From the IMG/VR virus record IMGVR_UViG_3300024502_000010, positions 62,001 to 126,000 of that record: a stretch of 64,000 bases of DNA; one strand, 5' to 3'. The position numbers were made by a program, and so were the translations under genes. Below the pieces are notes generated by a model. It was not told the DNA's origin, did no database searches, and worked only from the letters and a program-made list of their open reading frames with translations. Below are positions 1 through 57,382 of the stretch, in pieces (position 1 is the stretch's first letter; each line of letters starts with the position of its first letter).

Positions 1-220
1 TGGGTCCATAAACACCCTTCACTGCACTATCATTCCAGCGGTCATCAGTCCAGCAGCAAGACATATCACCACCATCAATCAAGTCAGCAACTTTCTGACG
101 AGTGTTGTAATGAGTGTTCAGGATACGACCCAACCATTCAGGATAACCATCCCAGTGGTGATACACAGAGAGAATAGAACCATTCTTAAGTTCAAGACCG
201 ATTCGTGCTCGGGTGGACAT
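1..220 (-). CDS. Hypothetical phage protein, truncated by the window edge
   Basis: ATG at 220 reads MSTRARIGLELKNGSILSVYHHWDGYPEWLGRILNTHYN... open to position 1; TATAAT at 239-244 upstream. Confidence 0.7.
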   Translation of the reverse strand, partial: MSTRARIGLELKNGSILSVYHHWDGYPEWLGRILNTHYNTRQKVADLIDGGDMSCCWTDDRWNDSAVKGVYGP

Positions 221-266
221 TTCAAGTTTGTTGCTTACATTATAGGTACACTTTAGAGGATCCAAG

Positions 267-1118
267 TTAGTAAACTGCTATGAGTTCACTTGCTTTTTTC
301 CTACTGCCGCCTTTTGCAGCAATCGTTCTAGTTACTTGAATTTGATAGATTGTAGCATTTTTGTAGAGTTCTCTTGTAATAGGAACATCGTGATTTGATA
401 CAATCACTTTGATACCTTTAGATGAAAGAGATTCTGCAAGTTGTGCTAACTGAACTTGTTGGTCAGAAGTAAATCCATCAGTCGCATAACTTGTGAAATT
501 TGCAGTATTTGATGCAGGAACATACGGTGGGTCAAAGTAGACAACATCACCTGCTTCCAAATCCTCATACAGAGATGAATCTTCAAAAGAAAGTGATGTG
601 AACCTCACCAATTGTTTGGATAAGAAATACATCCTGAAGTTCATCATTTCCTCTCTGGGAAAGTAAGCACTTTGTATTTCTTTCTCCCCAGTATCCTTAT
701 TTACAACTTCTCTACCATAAGGAACATTAAACATTCCTTTGCTATTATATCTTGATAGTCCATTAAAACAGTGCTTATTCAAATAAATGAATAACCTTGC
801 TCTCTCTGTAGTATCTGTTGCTTGATTGAAGTGCTCTCGCAACTCCAAATATACTTCTCTTGTATTATTCTCTGGCGTGAATAGTTCTTCGCAGTATTGA
901 ATGAAACTATCATCATTTGGATTTACCAAATTCTGATAGATTGCTACCAAATCCTTATTCACATCGTTGAGGATATATTGCTGTGCTGGTGTATTCAAAG
1001 CAACAGCAAGACTACCACCAAAGGGTTCACAATAACGCTTTGGATAACCAATATGGGGAATAAGATGGGGCAGAACTCTTGTTTTATTGCCAGCCCATTT
1101 AAGAAAAGTTTTGTTCAT
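267..1118 (-). CDS. dam: DNA adenine methyltransferase (Dam/D12 class)
   Basis: N-terminal LKWAGNK, SAM-binding EPFGGS, RARLFIYLN..CFNGL..YN..G.FNVPYG and catalytic DPPY motifs. Confidence 0.95.
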   Translation of the reverse strand: MNKTFLKWAGNKTRVLPHLIPHIGYPKRYCEPFGGSLAVALNTPAQQYILNDVNKDLVAIYQNLVNPNDDSFIQYCEELFTPENNTREVYLELREHFNQATDTTERARLFIYLNKHCFNGLSRYNSKGMFNVPYGREVVNKDTGEKEIQSAYFPREEMMNFRMYFLSKQLVRFTSLSFEDSSLYEDLEAGDVVYFDPPYVPASNTANFTSYATDGFTSDQQVQLAQLAESLSSKGIKVIVSNHDVPITRELYKNATIYQIQVTRTIAAKGGSRKKASELIAVY

Positions 1119-1164: not shown

Positions 1165-1831
1165 TCAACCACCCTTTTCTCTCAAACTTCGCACAAGATA
1201 CTCAGTAAATTGCTCCATCTTCTCAGGAACTACAGCAGCAGGGCGTTGATTGATTACATTTTTAAGTGCAGTCATTTCATTAAACTCTTCGTCTGTAAGT
1301 TTTTTATTTCCCTTTGAAGGAAGAGTCATAAGTTTTGCTCCCGTGATTATGTCCATATCCTAACACTATTTAAGGGGGTTGTGTGGTTTCTTAATATTCT
1401 CTTTGGGATTGTTTAACAGTTCTTAATCGTTGAAGAAAGAACCAAAACTACCACGACTTCCTGGTTTTCTATCTTCCAACATATCCATCAGTTCTTCGAT
1501 TTTTTTGCAGTTTTCCATATCAAGAAGAACTTGTGACAGTTGTTTTACAACTAATGGTTTTTCTGATGTAGATGCAACACGAATAGCAGCACGAAGATGT
1601 GATTCTGCTTCCAAGATATGATCTAAAGTTTGTTTACTTAGTGCCATTTAATCGGTCCTCGCATTTAGTGTAAAAAGTCCCTTCAACATAACAGGACTTA
1701 CCAGCTTCGTAGTATCTTACCACAGATGGTTTGGGTTGGTCAAGAGCACAATATCCTTGATTAGATAATGCACTTTCGGCACATAACATTAAAGCAGCGG
1801 GTGCAAGAAGTTTGATTGTATACATCAACAC
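1165..1831 (-). CDS. Three small hypothetical proteins (1165-1356, 1423-1647, 1634-1831)
   Basis: Co-oriented, closely packed ORFs from the track; no recognisable domain. Confidence 0.6.
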
Positions 1832-25669: not shown

Positions 25670-28600
25670 TTAGAATAATCGCCAACCAATGGTGCTATTT
25701 ACAAACATGAGATTCAGCGAAACATAACCGACATCCATTATCATGTCTTCCGCAAGTCCCATGAGTAAACTACCATTTCTTGCGATGGTAATATTTTGGA
25801 AATTGCCTGTGTTGTTTATTGTAACAAACCACCCAGCCACTGGATTTGTTGGCAAAGTTATTGTGGTATTATTTTGAGTTACGGAACAAAATTCCTTGTT
25901 AACTAACACTTTGTTTGCTGTAGTCGATGTTGTTGAATATAGATTTTTCCAAGTTATGCCAGCACCTACAGTTGAATCAATTGTTAACATAGTACCTTCA
26001 GGTCCAGGTCCAACAATTATTGCACTGTTGTTTGCAGATCCAACAACAAGTTCACCTTTGTTCTTCCAAGAGTTATCAGATAATAATGCACCCTGAGCAC
26101 CTAATGCAACTATGAAGTGAGATTTTCCTGCCTGTGGTGGGGTTAAAAAGCGAATTGTATTTGTGTTATCCCCAGCAGTTTGTAGAACTGTATAGTCAGT
26201 TCCTGGTTTCTGAATAACTCCCCCAATAGAAACTATAAGGTTTGCCGCATTACCTGATGGTATATAGTTAGTACCATTAATCTTCATGGAGAAATCAGTT
26301 CTTGAACCATTGAAAGGTCCACCATTAATTGCCTGATCAATACTATCAACAACAGCTGAGTTTCCTAATGGATATGCACCAGTAAGAGAGGAACTGTTGG
26401 TGGGAACAAATCCAAGAGCTGTGGTAACTTCGGAATATGATAATGGGGCATCTGCACCATTTGCCTTTAAGAAATTAGTTGGCGTTGCGTTCAATTTAAT
26501 AAACTGATTTGCTCTATAAATTGAAGTTTCACCAAGTCCAATAATATTGACTGTAGAAATGCCAGTTGTTGTATTGTATTGAGTATCTACACGAAGATTT
26601 GTGCCTACAAACTTAATTTGAGTTGTTAATCCAACATATGAGGTACTATTAGCGAGACCAATAGCAATATTGTCGGAAGAAACTGTAATGGTTGCGATAC
26701 CTATCGCAGATCCAAAAGAACCATTAATCTTAATCGGACCAGATCCTCTTATGTCTATGTTGGATGCAACACCAACAAAGTTTCCATTTGCAGATAGTCC
26801 AACAGCATTTTCCGAATATGGGAAGATTCTTCCAAACTTTTCCCATCTATTATTATTAGTATAAACCCAACCAATATAATCACCCGTAGATGGAATAGCG
26901 TTATAATGAACATCACCCGGGTTACCAGCAAGTGCTGGAGTAGAAATTCCTACAGTATGCTTTCTTGAGACTGCTGCATCTCCTTGTAAGAAGAGAGAAA
27001 CTACTTCAATACCTTTAGATGAATTTGAAGTTATCTTCTCATTGAAAACTACTGGTCCATTGAACTCAGAAATTGCTCTTCCGTTTGCCCCACCTTCAAC
27101 ACGGATAGAACGATTAAAAGTCCCTTCAATAGCAGTCAAAACATTAAGAGACGGTTCATTTCCAATATCTTCACCAGTTACGGTTAAGATTGGAGTATCA
27201 AATACTTCTTCCTGTCCAGTAACTGTGCTTAATTTCTTATTACCCGCATATGAAATTCCTTTATCATTCATACCGGTGTAGAAATTAACACCACCTTCTC
27301 TTCTTGTAGATTGTGCTAATAATTCTTCTTCTGTGGAAGTTTGTCTATCTTGCTTATCGGGGAAAGCAGTTGAATAGTTACCTGGTCCAAATCCAACATA
27401 TTCGAAGGTATGACCAGATGCACGAATAATTGAATTTCTTCTTAACTCAACTGGATTTACACTTATTCTTCTTACTGTAGAGTTAATTTTGTGACTTACT
27501 GCTTTAGTACCAAGAGCACCTCTAAATACAAAAATTGGATCTCCACTAACAATTGTTGATGGTACAGTTGTTTTAACTCTTACAACTTCTCCGTCTATTT
27601 GCAAGTAATCTCCAATTTTAATATCCAAATTATCAATTCCTCGGATGGTCACATTATCCGTGGTTGCATCGGTAATACCAAAAAGCAAAGTAGTAGTGAT
27701 TCCAGCATAATTATAATTCACTCTTCCAGAAATATTTTCATTATCGGGACTTATATCTCCATAATTTGAAGTTACTCCTTCTGGATAAACATGACCAAAA
27801 CTTGTACTGTTTTGAGCTGTGGTAGCAATTCCAACATTTACTACAAAGGACGTTAACCCAACATTATTAATAATAGAGAATCTTCCATTATGAATTGGAA
27901 GTTGATTTCCACTCAGTCTAACAGTATTGTCTATACTAAAACCATGATTTTCTAATGTTACAATCGTAGCAATTCCAGTTGTATGGGTATATCTAATCGT
28001 TGAAATTCCAATAGATCTTCCAGTTAAATAAACAAAGGAATTTTCTGAGAATGTTCTTCCAACCCCAGTTGAACTTCGATTAGGCACGGGATTTGCTGAA
28101 ACTGCCACAAAGCTCTTTGCAGCGCCAACCTTAACATCGGTAATTCTATATAAATCATTATATTCCAAATAGGAGACTGAAGAAATTCCAGAAACCCTCA
28201 CTACATCTCCAACATTATTATAAATTTTCGAAACAGTAACAACTCCGTGAGTGTGTCCAGTTGTTGTTGCTATACCGACTACAGCAAGTGTATTTCCGAT
28301 TCCATATGCACTACCACCATGCATAATTTGAACTTGGGAAAGACTTCCGTAAGAGTCAATTACAACTTTTGCAGTTGCATCTTGACCTGCAGCAGACCCA
28401 ACAAATCCGACTAATTTTGCATTATAATATGTGCCGGGAACATATTTTGCTCCAGTATTTGCAATACTTACTTTAGTGACTCGATTTAGACCATGTTCTA
28501 TTGATGTATAAAAGTCATGATTTGTTTGAGATGATGATTTGATGTCAGTAATACCAACTCCAACATCATTATCTTTAAGAAAATCATTAATAGTTTCTTT

Positions 28601-31600
28601 AGTAATACTATTTTGTACATCATCAACAACAACTTGTCCAATTAAAGATGGAGTTGCAAATGAATTTGCTGCATCTGGATCAGATTCTGGATTGTCTCTG
28701 TTTAGTTGTGGGTAAAGATCTTTTATTGATTGTGAATATTTTTCTTCTGTAAATGGAGTAACTGTGGGTGCGTTTGAGGAATTTAATATAGTTAAGTAAT
28801 ATATACCATCTTGTTTTTCTGGTATGTATTTTTGAACCTCTTTGTTTTGTTGAATATAATAAACTGAAGTATATTTCTTTCTCTTGAAGTATGGAAGATC
28901 TATATCTCTTTCTGTGGTATCATTTAAATATTCGCCGGGATTTGTATTTAATCCAACCGAAAATTGTCTGGAGCTTGAAATGCCAGAAACTGTAAATACT
29001 CTATTAAATCCTGTTTGGGATACGCCAATTGGATTATATTCGCTCTTAATGTTGACAAGTTCAACTTGAGAACCAACTGATAAATTATGTGGCAATTCTG
29101 TTAAAATATTCGCAACATTTCCACTCCAATTTGCATCAGCAATAAATTTGAAGTTTCTTTGTTGATTAATATTTGATAAAGTTCCTGTACCAAAATATGT
29201 TTGTATTTCTCCAGTGGTTGACCCAATAGAAGCATTTGATTCTTGAATAACAAAACCATCACTTGGTGGTCTTGCATATAATCTACCAGTTTGTGCAGGA
29301 ATTACATATCTTAATCTATAAATTCTATCCGATAAAATTCTATTATCTTTTTTACGAGTTATATAAGTTCTTGGAGTTGCATTTCCTAATGCAGAAACAC
29401 CAAGAGTCTTTATAATAGAATTAATTGTATTTTCACTTGATGCAGTTGCTACCTTTATATACCATTGTTGCTGAATATTATCATATTGAACAGGGTGTCC
29501 AATATCTCCAGGATTCTTATCAGAAACTCTACTGACTATTCTTAAAATTCCACCATTTGAGTTAATTGTGATCTGATTTCCATTAATTGCATCATTTAAA
29601 TTTTTTGCAAGTTTAAGAGTTGTATTTGTAGTCAATCCACTTAATGGATTTGCATTCGTTATTGCATAGTAAATATTATTTGGAATTAACCCATCGGGCA
29701 AATGTCCATTTCTACTTAAAATGCGAACTGTTTCTCCATTTTCGAAATTATGAGCTGTTGGAAAAGAAATGATGCTTGATGTATCGATGCTATTAATTCC
29801 AACAATGCTTCTACCAACATAAAAACTCTTTTCAGAACTCGTTTGAGAATTCTGCATCACAATACGAGAGCGATATTCTTTTACTGTCTCATTAACCGAT
29901 AGTGTAAGATTTAGATAGTCGTTCTCTTTTGCACCAACTCTATATCCTTCTTTTATGGTTTCTGGAAGAACATCTGGGTCAGTCTGACCGTATAAGTATA
30001 ACCTTTCGTTTGTTGTAGTAACCCCTACAACTTTTTGAACATCTATAGAGTCAAATTCAATTGCATATTCTGTTGGGGAAACATCCTTTGGTGGAATAAT
30101 ATGACTGATATAACCAAAATCATCTTGGGGGAAAGCATTTCTTCTGAATCCACTTGAAACTAATGACTTCGCACCAAAGTTAGAGTTGGAGTTTGTGATT
30201 GATTGGTCTCCACCAGTATCAACAGAAAAATGCTCTGCATAACCAATTGCAAAAACAGAGACATTCTGAATGAATGCATCGTTAACACATTTGATGTGGT
30301 AGTTTTTATATGCTGGTTTAAAGAGTGCTTTTGAATTGGAACTTATATTTTCATTACCAGTTATTGTATTGTCTTCATAAAGTCCCGTGTCAGAGTTATA
30401 AACAACAAATGCATTATCATCTTTCTGTAGTCCAATTCCAGTAAATTGGGCAACAACCATGGATTTAAATCCACTTGCCTTATCCCCATCTGCAAGAAGT
30501 CCACACATTCCGTATACAGAACGCAATGAACAGTTGAAGATGTATGGAGAAGCAGAGTTAACGGTATCGGATGCTAAAGCGAGTGTAGATCCAGTTGGTG
30601 ATGGTAAAGCTACTTGTGGTGCATTTTGAACTCTATAGACAAATGTGGTATCATTTAATTTTTCCGATATTACATATTGTCCATTATATCCAGGAACTTC
30701 TATTCCGTTAATTTTGATTGGAGTATCTGGTTCTAAACCAGGAACATTATCTACAGTGGTTACTGTAATTTTATTTGTTGGGGTGATTCCATTACCAGCT
30801 TTAATACTGCTTATTCCTACTGATAGACCAGTTGATCCAACAATTCTGTATTCATCAATTTTTGGTTCAATATCTAAACTTGCTGAAGGATAATCTGGTT
30901 CAATTGCACGACCAGATGATGCTCCATAAGCAAGACCAATCTTTTCATAATACATGTCAAGATCAGTACGATCATATTCTAAAGCAGAGGGATAAAATGC
31001 GTCTTGAATTCTGACACCATTTACACCATCCGCATATTCAAAAACTGTTAACTTATGGTGAGAAAAATTAGGGACAAATAGATTATCTGTATAATCTGTG
31101 TAGCATATTCCATTTGGATCTGCATCAAAAACAGTGAACTGCCAGAAATAGCATCCACCAGTTACTCTAAAAATAGCAGTTCTCTCAATGTTATCATTAG
31201 TTGGGTTCGGAACATATAGGGGACGAATCTTTGTTTTACGAAGATCCATTCCAACGATAGATGTTCCACGAGGGATAATAACACCACCATAAACACTATT
31301 AAGTTTGTATAGAGAGTTATTTCTGTCGGTTAAATCAAAGCTTGTTGTGGAATCAAATGGTGGGAAATCATTTGAAGTTAGTCCATTTCTCAGTCTATAA
31401 TTATTCTCTCCATCTGGAATATATCCGGGTCTGTTATCTACTAAGTGATCTCCCGGATACAATAGAATCGTAGTTTTTCCGAATCTATCGTTGTTTAATC
31501 CTCTTTGATACGAAAATCTTGCAGATTCAATTAATGCTCTCTGAATCGTTTTAAATGGACGAGTTAGAGAGTTTCCTTGATTTTCAACACTATCCGTAGA

Positions 31601-31678
31601 ATCTAAACTATTGGGATCTACGTATATAATTGTACCACGAACTGATTTCAGAAAATTATCTAATCTGGAGAGACCCAT
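25670..31678 (-). CDS. Large cyanomyovirus virion structural protein (2002 aa)
   Basis: MGLSRLDNFLK...GNSLTRPFKTIQRALIE start recognised from cyanomyoviruses; late promoter ATAAATA near 31710. Confidence 0.8.
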   Translation of the reverse strand: MGLSRLDNFLKSVRGTIIYVDPNSLDSTDSVENQGNSLTRPFKTIQRALIESARFSYQRGLNNDRFGKTTILLYPGDHLVDNRPGYIPDGENNYRLRNGLTSNDFPPFDSTTSFDLTDRNNSLYKLNSVYGGVIIPRGTSIVGMDLRKTKIRPLYVPNPTNDNIERTAIFRVTGGCYFWQFTVFDADPNGICYTDYTDNLFVPNFSHHKLTVFEYADGVNGVRIQDAFYPSALEYDRTDLDMYYEKIGLAYGASSGRAIEPDYPSASLDIEPKIDEYRIVGSTGLSVGISSIKAGNGITPTNKITVTTVDNVPGLEPDTPIKINGIEVPGYNGQYVISEKLNDTTFVYRVQNAPQVALPSPTGSTLALASDTVNSASPYIFNCSLRSVYGMCGLLADGDKASGFKSMVVAQFTGIGLQKDDNAFVVYNSDTGLYEDNTITGNENISSNSKALFKPAYKNYHIKCVNDAFIQNVSVFAIGYAEHFSVDTGGDQSITNSNSNFGAKSLVSSGFRRNAFPQDDFGYISHIIPPKDVSPTEYAIEFDSIDVQKVVGVTTTNERLYLYGQTDPDVLPETIKEGYRVGAKENDYLNLTLSVNETVKEYRSRIVMQNSQTSSEKSFYVGRSIVGINSIDTSSIISFPTAHNFENGETVRILSRNGHLPDGLIPNNIYYAITNANPLSGLTTNTTLKLAKNLNDAINGNQITINSNGGILRIVSRVSDKNPGDIGHPVQYDNIQQQWYIKVATASSENTINSIIKTLGVSALGNATPRTYITRKKDNRILSDRIYRLRYVIPAQTGRLYARPPSDGFVIQESNASIGSTTGEIQTYFGTGTLSNINQQRNFKFIADANWSGNVANILTELPHNLSVGSQVELVNIKSEYNPIGVSQTGFNRVFTVSGISSSRQFSVGLNTNPGEYLNDTTERDIDLPYFKRKKYTSVYYIQQNKEVQKYIPEKQDGIYYLTILNSSNAPTVTPFTEEKYSQSIKDLYPQLNRDNPESDPDAANSFATPSLIGQVVVDDVQNSITKETINDFLKDNDVGVGITDIKSSSQTNHDFYTSIEHGLNRVTKVSIANTGAKYVPGTYYNAKLVGFVGSAAGQDATAKVVIDSYGSLSQVQIMHGGSAYGIGNTLAVVGIATTTGHTHGVVTVSKIYNNVGDVVRVSGISSVSYLEYNDLYRITDVKVGAAKSFVAVSANPVPNRSSTGVGRTFSENSFVYLTGRSIGISTIRYTHTTGIATIVTLENHGFSIDNTVRLSGNQLPIHNGRFSIINNVGLTSFVVNVGIATTAQNSTSFGHVYPEGVTSNYGDISPDNENISGRVNYNYAGITTTLLFGITDATTDNVTIRGIDNLDIKIGDYLQIDGEVVRVKTTVPSTIVSGDPIFVFRGALGTKAVSHKINSTVRRISVNPVELRRNSIIRASGHTFEYVGFGPGNYSTAFPDKQDRQTSTEEELLAQSTRREGGVNFYTGMNDKGISYAGNKKLSTVTGQEEVFDTPILTVTGEDIGNEPSLNVLTAIEGTFNRSIRVEGGANGRAISEFNGPVVFNEKITSNSSKGIEVVSLFLQGDAAVSRKHTVGISTPALAGNPGDVHYNAIPSTGDYIGWVYTNNNRWEKFGRIFPYSENAVGLSANGNFVGVASNIDIRGSGPIKINGSFGSAIGIATITVSSDNIAIGLANSTSYVGLTTQIKFVGTNLRVDTQYNTTTGISTVNIIGLGETSIYRANQFIKLNATPTNFLKANGADAPLSYSEVTTALGFVPTNSSSLTGAYPLGNSAVVDSIDQAINGGPFNGSRTDFSMKINGTNYIPSGNAANLIVSIGGVIQKPGTDYTVLQTAGDNTNTIRFLTPPQAGKSHFIVALGAQGALLSDNSWKNKGELVVGSANNSAIIVGPGPEGTMLTIDSTVGAGITWKNLYSTTSTTANKVLVNKEFCSVTQNNTTITLPTNPVAGWFVTINNTGNFQNITIARNGSLLMGLAEDMIMDVGYVSLNLMFVNSTIGWRLF

Positions 31679-31720
31679 CTTATTAATACTTATAGTTTCC
31701 GTTATAAGTTATTTATTAAA

Positions 31721-31758
31721 CGAAAAAAGAGACTAGGATTACTCCCAGTCTCTTTTCG
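31721..31758 (-). terminator. Intrinsic terminator (possibly bidirectional)
   Basis: AAAAGAGACT...AGTCTCTTTT inverted repeat with A/T tracts. Confidence 0.85.
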
Positions 31759-31772
31759 CACTTCCTTCACAC
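31721..31772 (-). ncRNA. Candidate ~50-nt small RNA (5'-GUGUGAAGGAAGUG + terminator hairpin)
   Basis: TTGACT (31803-31808)-N18-TATAAT (31779-31784) puts +1 at about 31772, only 14 nt before the terminator. Confidence 0.45.
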
Positions 31773-32390
31773 CTCAATATTATACCATGACTCTTCTTTC
31801 CAAGTCAAGCGTTTTTGAAGTTGTTTATCAAATACCATTAAATATCTGTGCTTTCTACTTCGTTCTTTCCACTCACCTTCATAACCTTTTACTTTTCCAC
31901 GAGAGTGTTTAGTTCCGTCTGAATAGTAGAAATCTTTTTTTCTATCCGTGAGACCGTAATATTTAAAATTGCAAGCCCGATAGATTGTACCAGAATGGTA
32001 ATCGTTATCAGCATAAGAGAGGATTGCTTTAACTTCAGTATCTCTCCGAAGTTGTCTAATCGCTTTTGAAACAAACCAAGAAGTGATGTTATATTCACTA
32101 GATTGTGTATCAGGTCTGATGCATAATCTGGAGAGTTCGAAGAGTCCTTGTTGTTCGTGTCTTTCAAGTCCAAATGCTCCTTTCGCTACTTCAGGTACTG
32201 GCAGTCCAGTGAATATACAAACTCCTTGAAGACCACCTATATTCAAAGGAGAGAACTCATTATTTTTAAAGAGTCCGTAATTATATCCAGACTTGAATCC
32301 TTTTGATATATCTTTAAGATAATGGTATTTTAGTAAAAGTTCTTCTGATTGTTTTTTTGTTACTTTATCAATATAGAAGTCAGACTTCAT
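31767..32390 (-). CDS. Mom-like GNAT-fold DNA modification protein
   Basis: HYL..., GVCIF.G.P, ELSRLCI, SWFVSKAIRQL, ILSYADN.YHSGTIYRACNF motifs resemble Mu Mom family. Confidence 0.7.
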   Translation of the reverse strand: MKSDFYIDKVTKKQSEELLLKYHYLKDISKGFKSGYNYGLFKNNEFSPLNIGGLQGVCIFTGLPVPEVAKGAFGLERHEQQGLFELSRLCIRPDTQSSEYNITSWFVSKAIRQLRRDTEVKAILSYADNDYHSGTIYRACNFKYYGLTDRKKDFYYSDGTKHSRGKVKGYEGEWKERSRKHRYLMVFDKQLQKRLTWKEESWYNIEV

Positions 32391-32560
32391 TCAGGTTGCT
32401 TACATTCCATCATATATTCTACAGTGTTTGCTACATCATTCATAGCATCACGGAGAAATGGTTGTTGACCAGATTCTTGTTTAATGATTGGTCTTGAATC
32501 ATCAGTGAGAATCCAACGCCACTGCTTCATGGACTCACAATACCATAGATTAATTTTCAT
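32387..32560 (-). CDS. Hypothetical protein (MKINLWYCESMKQWRW...)
   Basis: 57 aa; start reassigned because ORF 32550-32708 occupies the upstream part. Confidence 0.65.
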   Translation of the reverse strand: MKINLWYCESMKQWRWILTDDSRPIIKQESGQQPFLRDAMNDVANTVEYMMECKQPE

Positions 32561-32708
32561 GTTTGAAGTGCTCCAGTTCGACCCAGTTAAGGAGTGTTTG
32601 GAATGCACTGATAGAGGCAGGAGTGCAGTTATCTTCCTTAAGTTTTTGAACATAATATTCAAGTGCTTCAATGACCATTTGACGGTCTTGTTGTGAAATA
32701 AGTGACAT
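32550..32708 (-). CDS. Hypothetical protein (MSLISQQDRQMVIEALEYY...)
   Basis: 52-aa ORF found by manual translation, below the track cutoff. Confidence 0.65.
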   Translation of the reverse strand: MSLISQQDRQMVIEALEYYVQKLKEDNCTPASISAFQTLLNWVELEHFKHEN

Positions 32709-32726
32709 TGGAGTTATAGAACTCAG

Positions 32727-32798
32727 AGCCCCCGACTGGATTTGAACCAGCGACCAACGGTTTACAAAACCGTTGCTCTACCACTGAGCTACAAGGGC
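32727..32798 (-). tRNA. tRNA-Thr(UGU), no encoded CCA
   Basis: Cloverleaf; D loop TAGCTCAGTGGTAGAGC; anticodon stem AACGG/CCGTT with TT-TGT-AA loop; GGTTCAAATCC T arm. Confidence 0.95.
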
Positions 32799-32799
32799 A

Positions 32800-33069
32800 T
32801 TAATCAACAGGTAACATTTCTGGATTTTCCAGTTCAAGTTCAAACATAAGAGGATGACATTCTTCAAGCATTAAGTAATATGATGCTTGATAAAGGTCCT
32901 CTGGTTCAAATCTTCTTTCGTTATCTGCTAATTTGATAAGTTCCAAATCGAATATTGATTCGTCTGGAAGGTCGTCAAAAGTAAAAGGAATTTGATTTAT
33001 GAAATACATCAGAACAATTTGTGTTCCGCGATTGTACCAAACATATCTGGCATCTATTCTGTATTTCAT
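32800..33069 (-). CDS. Conserved-looking cyanophage hypothetical protein
   Basis: 89 aa; late-type TAAATA near 33092. Confidence 0.7.
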   Translation of the reverse strand: MKYRIDARYVWYNRGTQIVLMYFINQIPFTFDDLPDESIFDLELIKLADNERRFEPEDLYQASYYLMLEECHPLMFELELENPEMLPVD

Positions 33070-33646: not shown

Positions 33647-34324
33647 TTAGAGTTCCAACCATTGAGAGGGGTGCGTCGAACTCTGGTGATAGTTAAAATG
33701 TTCTTCTTTCAAAGTAACACGAATATCACCAGGAATTACAATACGCTCTTCTTTTCTCTCCGTAAACTTTTGCGTAAAATGACCAACATTACTCGGAAAG
33801 ATAACAACTGTCCCTTCTTTTGGAGTAATCGTATAGTAATTGCAATTATACTTATTGTAATTACTGATTAAATTGTTTTGAGAGGATGTTTCAAATATTC
33901 CACCAACACATTCATTTTTATTTTTATCCTGAACAATACACAATCTATCAGAAGTTTCGTCAGTCTTTAGATAATAAACATAACTTAAATTAGATTCATT
34001 GTGCGTATGTGGTTTTAATGGTGGTTCTTCATCACTAAAATGGCATCCAACCCACGATTTGATGTTGTGATAACTCAGTTTACTATAATCTACATTGAGA
34101 ATTTTGAAGTAATTGTCTATGTGAGTACGAAGTTCTTTAAAAAAAGACTTATATTCTTCTTTTGAATGGACAAATATTTTTCCAGAGTACTCAGGACTTT
34201 CGTTCTCATATCCATTAAACCAATAATCACGAAGACGATCTAAATTATTTTTTTTAAATTCTTCATGACATTGGACATCACCTTGATAAATTATCAAAGG
34301 AAATAATTCGTGTATTTTACTCAA
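33647..34324 (-). CDS. Putative 2OG-Fe(II) oxygenase (TIGR02466-like)
   Basis: SWV...PHTH.ESNLSYVYYL, P.EGTVVIFPSNVGH, ERIVI jelly-roll motifs. Confidence 0.75.
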   Translation of the reverse strand: MSKIHELFPLIIYQGDVQCHEEFKKNNLDRLRDYWFNGYENESPEYSGKIFVHSKEEYKSFFKELRTHIDNYFKILNVDYSKLSYHNIKSWVGCHFSDEEPPLKPHTHNESNLSYVYYLKTDETSDRLCIVQDKNKNECVGGIFETSSQNNLISNYNKYNCNYYTITPKEGTVVIFPSNVGHFTQKFTERKEERIVIPGDIRVTLKEEHFNYHQSSTHPSQWLEL

Positions 34325-56035: not shown

Positions 56036-57382
56036 GTGGCAAATACAAAAACAAGCAAACCAAGTTTAGTAACTGTAGGAAATCAACAAGTAGCAGTAAA
56101 AACTGTTGTCACTGACAATGGAAATAATAATTTTTCCATACAAGTTGTAAGAAATAGCGCAACTAACCCAAGTGCAACTGGAACTGTTATTGCGGCAACA
56201 GATTCCTCAGGAAAGTTAAAGCCAACAGCAAATGCATCATCTCAAGAAAAATTAGACATTAGCAATACAAATAGTCAATTAATAAAAGAAGTAAGAAATC
56301 AAAAAAGTGGACTTGAAGCACCTTTGGGAGTCACTGATCCAACAGCAAAAGCAGCATATAATAAGGCAGGTGGTCTTGGATCTGGAAATCAAGCAATAAA
56401 TCCAGAGCAGAATAAATCCCCAGAATCTCTTCCGAGTGATGAAGCAAAGGAAGCACTATTTGGAGAATCCGAAAGTTTCAGAGAGAAGACAAGATTAAAT
56501 TATGGAGATGCTAGATATCCATTAGATTTATCAATAGAATTTCAGGATTGTATAAAGTTTACAATTTTAAATTATAGACCATCTTTAGCTGGGGGAAAAG
56601 GTGGACAAGGAAGCACCGGAGAAGTTAGTAGAATTGTCACGATTGATAAAGGAAATCCAACCATAGGTAAAGAAAGACTTGGAACCATAACTCTACCAAT
56701 TCCGGCAGGAATTTCTGATAGTAATTCGGTGAGTTGGCAAGAAGATCCTATTAATAACTTTCAAGAAGCTCTCGGCAATATCACTCAAAAATATATCATA
56801 GGTGGTACGGAAGCTGCAACACCGGCAGTAGGATCTGCGACAGACACACTGAAATCTTCAGTAGATTCTGGAGATTTGCAAAGATCCCTCTCTGCCACAT
56901 TAGCGGGATATGCAGCCCAAACAGATAAGCTGCAGCAGAGAGTATATGGAACTATGTTCAATAATAACCTAGAACTGCTGTTTAATGGGCCCGGTCTTAG
57001 AACTTTTTCTTTTGGATTTAAATTATCCCCAAGAAGTCCATCAGAAGCAAAAGAAGTAATGAAAATTATTCGTTACTTTAAGCAAGCAATGTCTGTAAAA
57101 AGAAGCAAATCTTCTATTTTACTTAAAACACCAAGAACATTTGCAATATCATATATGTCATCTAATCAACAACATCCATACTTAAATAAATTTAAGGAGT
57201 GTGCATTGACATCAATGAATGTTGATTATACGCCAGATGGTCAATACATGACATATATGAGCTCAAATATAAATGAAAGATCAATGATATCATATAATCT
57301 AACATTATCTTTCCAAGAACTTGAGCCAGTATTTGATGATGAATATGGTAATGAGCAAGTAATTACAAACATAGGTTACTAA
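56036..57382 (+). CDS. 48: Baseplate tail-tube cap gp48
   Basis: YPLD...DCIKF, I.LPIP..I.D.N.V.W, N.ELLF.GP.LR.FSF.F.L.PRS..EA, F.EL; followed by gp53. Confidence 0.85.
   Translation: MANTKTSKPSLVTVGNQQVAVKTVVTDNGNNNFSIQVVRNSATNPSATGTVIAATDSSGKLKPTANASSQEKLDISNTNSQLIKEVRNQKSGLEAPLGVTDPTAKAAYNKAGGLGSGNQAINPEQNKSPESLPSDEAKEALFGESESFREKTRLNYGDARYPLDLSIEFQDCIKFTILNYRPSLAGGKGGQGSTGEVSRIVTIDKGNPTIGKERLGTITLPIPAGISDSNSVSWQEDPINNFQEALGNITQKYIIGGTEAATPAVGSATDTLKSSVDSGDLQRSLSATLAGYAAQTDKLQQRVYGTMFNNNLELLFNGPGLRTFSFGFKLSPRSPSEAKEVMKIIRYFKQAMSVKRSKSSILLKTPRTFAISYMSSNQQHPYLNKFKECALTSMNVDYTPDGQYMTYMSSNINERSMISYNLTLSFQELEPVFDDEYGNEQVITNIGY

Follow-up and report, generated by a model that had tools for sequence, protein, structure and literature searches.

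Does the 3' end of a Mom-family gene in a cyanophage genome encode a small RNA, and if so, with which host RNA does it pair? The question was raised by a predicted ~50-nt transcript in a 64,000-nt window, bases 62001-126000 of the 204.8-kb IMG/VR virus record IMGVR_UViG_3300024502_000010. According to the original prediction, this RNA would bind the conserved motif of the host RNA Yfr1, acting as a sponge or as a Yfr2 mimic and altering host porin expression. The record carries two Photo_RC-family genes (psbA/psbD type) and 15 tRNA genes, has a GC content of 36.7%, and resembles T4-like Synechococcus phages. Its psbA is 92–94% identical to those of freshwater and estuarine Cyanobium/Synechococcus, five genomes of which were taken as host-like. 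The host is inferred from psbA similarity only.

A conserved promoter–seed–hairpin unit

All genes in this stretch run on the minus strand. The upstream gene (32390-31767, 207 aa) belongs to the Mom family (PF25680, E = 5e-27), and its last ~14 codons carry a sigma70-like promoter. The -35 hexamer TTGACT (31808-31803) lies inside the Mom codons R-L-T-W. It is separated by an 18-nt spacer from the -10 TATAAT (31784-31779), which is preceded by an upstream TG (extended -10 TGgTATAAT, 31779-31786) and lies inside the codons W-Y-N. This promoter scores 11/12 and is the best promoter-like site in 30500-33000. Six nt separate the -10 from G31772, which is thus the expected +1. From there the strand reads GTGTGAAGGAAGTGCG (31772-31757), so that the RNA would begin GUGUGAAGGAAGUGCG, overlapping the last Mom codon GTG and the stop TGA at 31769-31767. 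This 16-nt segment, hereafter the seed, is predicted to be single-stranded (P(unpaired) ≥ 0.77 for nt 1–15).

The seed is followed by an intrinsic terminator (31756-31723), shared by the Mom mRNA and the small RNA, made of A4, a 10-bp stem (31752-31743 / 31738-31729), a GUAA loop and U6 (31728-31723). For the 58-nt stretch 31772-31715, dG is -24 kcal/mol with z = -6.3, and 0 of 200 shuffles fold as well, although a simple terminator scan had missed the site. The predicted 3' end gives an RNA of about 50 nt. A T4-type late-promoter-like AATAAATA (31717-31710), read directly from the sequence, precedes the ATG (31678) of a 2002-aa tail-fibre-like ORF (25670-31678, minus strand). The 5' part of this ORF is 73% identical at the DNA level to the S-PRM1 tail-fibre gene, and its syntenic counterpart in S-SM2 is annotated as a tail fibre. 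The anatomy described in the original prediction, including the size of the RNA, is therefore confirmed. In six metatranscriptome runs from the source river the region was found, but as assembled contigs of 13–14 kb with a single mean depth and no ends or peaks at 31772/31723, so that these data neither show nor exclude a short RNA, and its accumulation and binding in infected cells were not measured. Architecturally, the unit is of the 3'UTR type, as are the type I 3'UTR-derived sRNAs of enterobacteria DapZ and MicL, which have their own promoter inside the 3' end of the upstream coding region and share the terminator of the mRNA. It differs from them in being phage-encoded and in having a tRNA, rather than an mRNA, as predicted target; no Hfq-type chaperone dependence is known in picocyanobacteria.

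It had been stated in advance that the proposal would fail if the motif were conserved only because of the Mom codons. To test this, 80 IMG/VR loci holding Mom homologues at 79–100% identity were compared. About half have the same layout, with Mom, promoter, short segment, terminator, late promoter and tail-fibre gene. In several of these, Mom stops earlier at tggTAA, a stop that then forms a TAAAAT -10, and the segment GGTGTGAAGGAAGTGCGAAAG is non-coding yet unchanged, while the hairpin sequence differs. Mom homologues without the unit end about 10 residues earlier. The C-terminal extension, present only where the unit follows, therefore appears to exist in order to carry the promoter. In other relatives Mom is replaced by other genes, tRNAs or late promoters, yet the unit persists. 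Its conservation is thus not explained by the Mom codons.

The exact 16-mer was found in at least 119 IMG/VR contigs, almost all cyanophage-like, whereas control 15-mers with one A deleted gave only 34 and 22 hits, mostly chance, a few of them lying in cyanophage units. The 16-mer nearly always sits at the predicted +1 of an early or late promoter. It occurs after other genes, behind CTAAATA late promoters, and inside phage tRNA arrays, where a short hairpin and then a tRNA follow, 14 times tRNA-Gly(UCC). Of 98 unique units, 66 have a ≥10/12 sigma70 promoter, and in 60 the -10 ends exactly 6 nt before the 16-mer, so that its first G is the expected +1, by sequence only, the transcription start not having been measured. 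TTGAC is conserved both in Mom-linked relatives and in unrelated contexts. The 98 units have 82 distinct downstream sequences. In 74 unique terminator-type units the predicted RNA has a median length of 48 nt, and the hairpins differ in sequence but fold with a median z of -6.9 (71 with z < -2), the median P(unpaired) of the seed being 0.93. The longer structured extension that follows the seed in tRNA arrays matches no Rfam family, has no consistent host match beyond the 16-mer, and its fold is not significant (z = -1.5).

The cultured phages S-SM2 and Bellamy carry the unit, unannotated, at the syntenic place upstream of their tail-fibre genes. In S-SM2 the flanking order is tRNA-Leu, ORF, tRNA-Thr, small ORF, unit, tail fibre. 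In contrast, S-PM2, Syn9, S-CRM01, P-SSM2 and S-PRM1 lack the 16-mer at ≤1 mismatch.

Pairing with Yfr1 compared with tRNA-Val(CAC)

The premises of the Yfr1 proposal are confirmed by the literature. Yfr1, Yfr10, Yfr12 and Yfr18 share or nearly share the motif ACUCCUCACAC, with which the 5' ends of the Yfr2 family pair (PMC2518516), and Yfr2 binds Yfr1 and Yfr10 through that 5' motif (PMC6778093). The host-like genomes encode Yfr1 (RF01116, 64–69 bits) and Yfr2, which is Cyano-1 in Rfam (RF01701, 48–60 bits). Host Yfr2 begins (U/C)GUGUGAGGAGUGC, of which GUGUGAGGAGUGC equals the phage seed minus two A residues. The pairing of 11 nt with two bulged A residues exists exactly as predicted. However, when it was confronted with shuffled seeds, a control that the proposal itself had called for, the duplex energy was -15.4 kcal/mol against -14.2 +/- 2.5, and 300 of 1000 shuffles did as well.

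Like Yfr2, the phage RNA has a free 5'-terminal purine-rich seed of the type GUGUGA..GGA..GUGC and a Rho-independent terminator; the seed of Yfr2 acts by pairing with a C/U-rich single-stranded motif. Nevertheless, a covariance-model search of 31500-32000 at E ≤ 10 listed no Cyano-1 or Yfr match and only spurious hits, and at gathering threshold nothing but two tRNAs was found in the window. Host Yfr2 has GUGUGAGGAGU without bulges, whereas the phage seed needs two 1-nt bulges. Only the terminator hairpin follows the seed, the internal stem-loops of Yfr2 being absent. The phage unit thus fails every defining feature of Yfr2/Cyano-1 that was tested. The bulge-free Yfr2 motif has 14 hits in IMG/VR, all in coding or unrelated contexts and none in a promoter/hairpin context. 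Although the full-length cofold with Yfr1 gains -12.5 kcal/mol, we consider this reading very unlikely. A Shine-Dalgarno-like role of AAGGAAGUG was also considered and dropped, as no start codon follows.

To look for another partner, the 16-mer was searched in the five host-like genomes. Each gave exactly one exact hit, lying inside a 72-nt tRNA with anticodon loop UUCACAC (1480-1551, plus strand, of the host-like sequence labelled L454), identified as tRNA-Val(CAC) by aragorn. The seed is the exact reverse complement of nt 23–38, which cover the 3' strand of the D stem, A26, the 5' strand of the anticodon stem and the anticodon loop. The two “bulged” A residues, found throughout the phage copies, are exactly what is needed for this 16/16 match. 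In a phylum-wide sample, 64 of 401 cyanobacterial genomes hold exactly one copy of the 16-mer, against 0 for the reversed control. A rare seed variant lacking one A, GTGTGAAGGAGTGCG, has no matching host tRNA among the 151 cyanobacterial genomes searched. The seed:tRNA duplex is -30.6 kcal/mol, reached by 0 of 1000 shuffled seeds. Cofolding of the two full-length RNAs gains -17.9 kcal/mol, against only -2.8 kcal/mol for the phage's own tRNA-Val(UAC), which differs at 6 of the 17 aligned positions of the target stretch. Of the 42 tRNAs of one host-like genome, only Val(CAC) has an antisense match longer than 13 nt in the phage outside the phage's own tRNA genes, apart from an 18-nt 94% match to the tRNA-Leu D-arm region, which was not pursued. 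The interpretation given in the original prediction is therefore only partly supported: this is a dedicated small transcription unit, but the proposed target is not supported. The resemblance of the seed to the Yfr2 5' end is explained by the Yfr1 motif itself resembling the tRNA-Val anticodon arm.

A second unit and alternative readings

In many related phages, the place between Mom and the tail-fibre gene is occupied by a different conserved RNA (class 2), GGCGAUACU..AACCA..CCCCUUCCGUGUGA, or with its variable position ..AACCA..(C/U)CCCUUCCGUGUGACUU, followed by a terminator. It is found either behind the same promoter or, often, directly after a phage tRNA gene, as its 3' trailer. It aligns to the antisense of tRNA-Val(CAC) nt 33–71 with the T loop deleted, with duplex energies of -46 to -58 kcal/mol against -18 to -27 for shuffles. 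The two classes share only GUGUGA, the complement of loop nt 33–38, one extending over the 5' side of the anticodon stem and the other over the 3' side. Class 2 pairs with Yfr1 only through GUGUGA, and has no purine run of the kind considered above. One class-2 variant has lost the anticodon-stem complement, which looks like decay of a captured tRNA fragment. Two different antisense pieces of the same tRNA, both placed at transcript ends, are the strongest argument that the tRNA, or its precursor, is the partner. A comparable case is the 3'ETS-leuZ tRNA-spacer sponge of E. coli, in which an sRNA pairs with an RNA derived from a tRNA transcript; there the tRNA by-product sponges sRNAs, whereas here the phage RNA is complementary to the body of a mature host tRNA.

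Alternatively, the unit may have no RNA target, being a promoter-terminator cassette or a relic of a captured, inverted tRNA-Val gene fragment, kept for DNA-level reasons such as recombination between phages, insulation of the late tail-fibre gene, or promoter strength through the initial transcribed sequence. T4-type phages carry mobile early-promoter/stem-loop cassettes, called PeSLs (PMC4122927), which likewise join a near-consensus sigma70 early promoter to a stem-loop. Moreover, the unit sits at a boundary where the upstream gene varies (Mom in this window, a small ORF in S-SM2), and class-2 variants show piecemeal loss of tRNA-derived segments. However, PeSLs are multi-copy within a genome, clustered in hyperplastic regions, and share their stem-loop sequence, whereas the 204.8-kb record holds only one copy of the unit. 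Here the hairpin and promoter spacer diverge freely, while precisely the 16 tRNA-complementary bases between promoter and stem-loop stay constant, and the PeSL literature does not describe this element. Two segments of the same tRNA, both in antisense orientation and at RNA 5' or 3' positions, are also hard to explain by neutral decay. Nor does the unit look like an attP fragment, that is, a sense-oriented 3' part of a tRNA able to restore the gene next to an integrase: class 1 covers only nt 23–38, class 2 has the T loop deleted, and the flanking genes are Mom and a tail fibre (the genome was not searched for an integrase). We regard the absence of an RNA target as unlikely, though not negligible.

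The seed lies immediately 5' of a terminator, so that binding of tRNA-Val to the nascent RNA could instead modulate termination in cis, and thereby read-through into the tail-fibre gene or downstream phage tRNA genes. T-box leaders provide a precedent for RNA-anticodon pairing. A TAAATA motif follows 72 of 102 class-1 units, in which a late gene follows, and 45 of 63 class-2 units; in 17 of the 102 a tRNA gene follows. However, the seed does not overlap the terminator stem, so no alternative antiterminator pairing is evident, the downstream gene has its own late promoter, and Rfam finds no T-box or other riboswitch match. Sixteen base pairs would also require unfolding of the tRNA, unlike codon-sized T-box contacts. 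This possibility thus appears remote. Retroviral/LTR primer-binding sites likewise recognise one specific tRNA, over 16–18 nt, but no reverse transcriptase is involved here, and the complementarity is to the D-stem/anticodon arm (class 1) or to the 3' half with the T loop deleted (class 2).

A possible anti-tRNA small RNA

We propose that the unit is a small-RNA gene of a T4-like cyanophage, encoding a trans-acting anti-tRNA. Host RNA polymerase would start at G31772 and stop about 50 nt later, and the RNA would nucleate on the exposed anticodon loop (GUGUGA against U33-C38) of mature or nascent tRNA-Val(CAC), then invade the anticodon stem and mask the anticodon. The tRNA would thereby be withdrawn from translation, and possibly exposed to a double-strand RNase, and decoding of GUG would fall. 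The present analysis establishes the anatomy, the conservation, the phasing of the seed with promoters and the exact complementarity, whereas transcription, binding in the cell and the effect on the tRNA are inferences. Mature tRNA is tightly folded, modified, abundant and largely bound by EF-Tu or ribosomes, so that a 16-nt antisense may not invade it efficiently, and the free-energy estimates ignore tertiary structure, modifications, abundance and protein binding. The lack of the 16-mer in five model cyanophages, the rare seed variant without a matching host tRNA and the class-2 variant that has lost the anticodon-stem complement also count against this view. Our confidence that pairing with tRNA-Val(CAC) is the selected function is moderate.

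Codon usage fits this view. GUG represents 61% of Val codons (43 per 1000 codons) in host-like genomes and 9% (6.1 per 1000) in the phage; all NNG codons are rare in the phage, however, so this is not specific evidence. The phage encodes a tRNA-Val(UAC), and about 2 Mb of related phage loci hold 12 tRNA-Val(UAC) genes, whereas the only two tRNA-Val(CAC) genes lie on the two GC-rich contigs that were chance hits, none being on a cyanophage contig. Some phage tRNA-Val(UAC) genes share their acceptor and T arms with the host tRNA-Val(CAC), but differ precisely in the region that the seed targets. Pairing could also serve a purpose other than host shut-off, such as shielding the anticodon loop from a host anticodon nuclease, guiding a modification or cleavage enzyme, or capturing tRNA fragments. 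The same complementarity supports it, and tRNA-cleaving defence systems, and phage tRNAs that counter them, are documented (for example PMC12409363). Yet masking the anticodon also blocks decoding, so shielding would not restore function, and no candidate partner enzyme was identified next to the unit, where the neighbouring genes vary. We therefore hold such purposes to be improbable.

Phage-encoded sRNAs are few, and all known ones act on mRNAs, on CRISPR machinery or on replication; none found in the searchable literature targets a host tRNA. A phage trans-acting antisense sRNA is thus not new in itself, but its class of target would be unprecedented. More tentatively, cyanomyoviruses may encode a family of ~50-nt anti-tRNA RNAs in two forms, covering the 5' or the 3' side of the anticodon arm, that take host tRNA-Val(CAC) out of service while the phage supplies a seed-resistant tRNA-Val(UAC). 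This would be an RNA-guided, codon-selective shut-off of host translation, and a new rationale for phage tRNA genes. The finding is also a caution, since a plausible-looking sRNA-sRNA pairing turned out to be a by-product of the similarity between the Yfr1 motif and a tRNA anticodon arm. It would add a conserved, abundant and easily testable element to environmental cyanophage genomes. If the RNA binds tRNA-Val(CAC), it would show that a virus can reprogramme decoding one anticodon at a time using RNA alone, and it would link two long-standing puzzles, why AT-rich cyanophages of GC-rich hosts carry tRNA genes, and how they shut off host translation.

Structured RNAs and tRNA matches in the cyanophage sequences

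A permuted tmRNA gene of the cyanobacterial type (RF01851, 194 bits) sits on a cyanophage contig, at positions 197-493 (+) of L131, about 1 kb upstream of a class-1 unit, i.e. a unit carrying the 16-mer. In the same cyanophage contigs, wcaG RNA motifs (RF01761, 95-97 bits) were found at L097:5338-5436, L146:560-660 (-) and L121:3121-3220, together with an abiF RNA hit (RF03085, 44.8 bits) at L140:2203-2239 (-). In the window itself, an 18-nt, 94% match to the D-arm region of host tRNA-Leu genes (56692-56709) was located outside any predicted phage tRNA gene.

Variants and a possible relative of the antisense units

In phage tRNA arrays (L110:7627-7680, and similarly in L097, L140, L160 and L198), the 16-mer is followed by a conserved extension of ~55 nt (..GUGCCUGU.AAG.GGAAA..CUGAGGCUGGGUAAAUCCC..), placed ahead of a tRNA. 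This extension belongs to no Rfam family and has no host match, and its fold is not significant. A separate group of contigs, from IMG sample 3300045988 and others (L432-L447), has GTGTGAGGAAGTGCG, with one A fewer, directly behind a promoter-like site and followed by two hairpins, and this may correspond to a related sRNA in another phage lineage. Finally, a third variant was observed downstream of Mom in loci L014, L031, L036 and L040. It keeps the complement of the tRNA-Val acceptor and T arm, as well as GUGUGA, whereas the anticodon-stem complement is replaced by CAAAAA.

The end of the Mom gene and its surroundings

The end of the Mom gene in the window (31767-31830, minus strand) was compared with the Mom homologues of the collected loci (L001-L080). 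Homologues followed by the unit carry a C-terminal extension of ~10 residues (..RLTWKEE.WYN..), whose codons form the -35 and the -10. In contrast, homologues without the unit end at ..LLW. The promoter appears to be overprinted on coding sequence. Further upstream, a 2OG-Fe(II) oxygenase gene (33647-34324, minus strand; PF13759, E = 3e-14) precedes the block tRNA-Leu / ORF / tRNA-Thr / ORF / Mom. The order of this block is conserved in phage S-SM2, except that S-SM2 lacks Mom.

Phage tRNA-Val(UAC) genes and the host Yfr1, Yfr2 and tRNA-Val sequences

Some phage tRNA-Val(UAC) genes, found in L097 and L098, have acceptor and T arms identical to those of host tRNA-Val(CAC), but differ in their D stem and anticodon arm, which is exactly the region complementary to the class-1 seed.

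The host loci encoding Yfr1 (L372:1475-1531), Yfr2 (L379:1447-1515) and tRNA-Val (L454:1480-1551) were also compared. The Yfr1 motif CACUCCUCACAC equals nt 25-38 of tRNA-Val(CAC) (CACUUCCUUCACAC) minus two U residues, a resemblance that may be either a coincidence or the trace of a shared origin. The host Yfr2 5' motif therefore looks like an anti-tRNA-Val seed minus two A residues.
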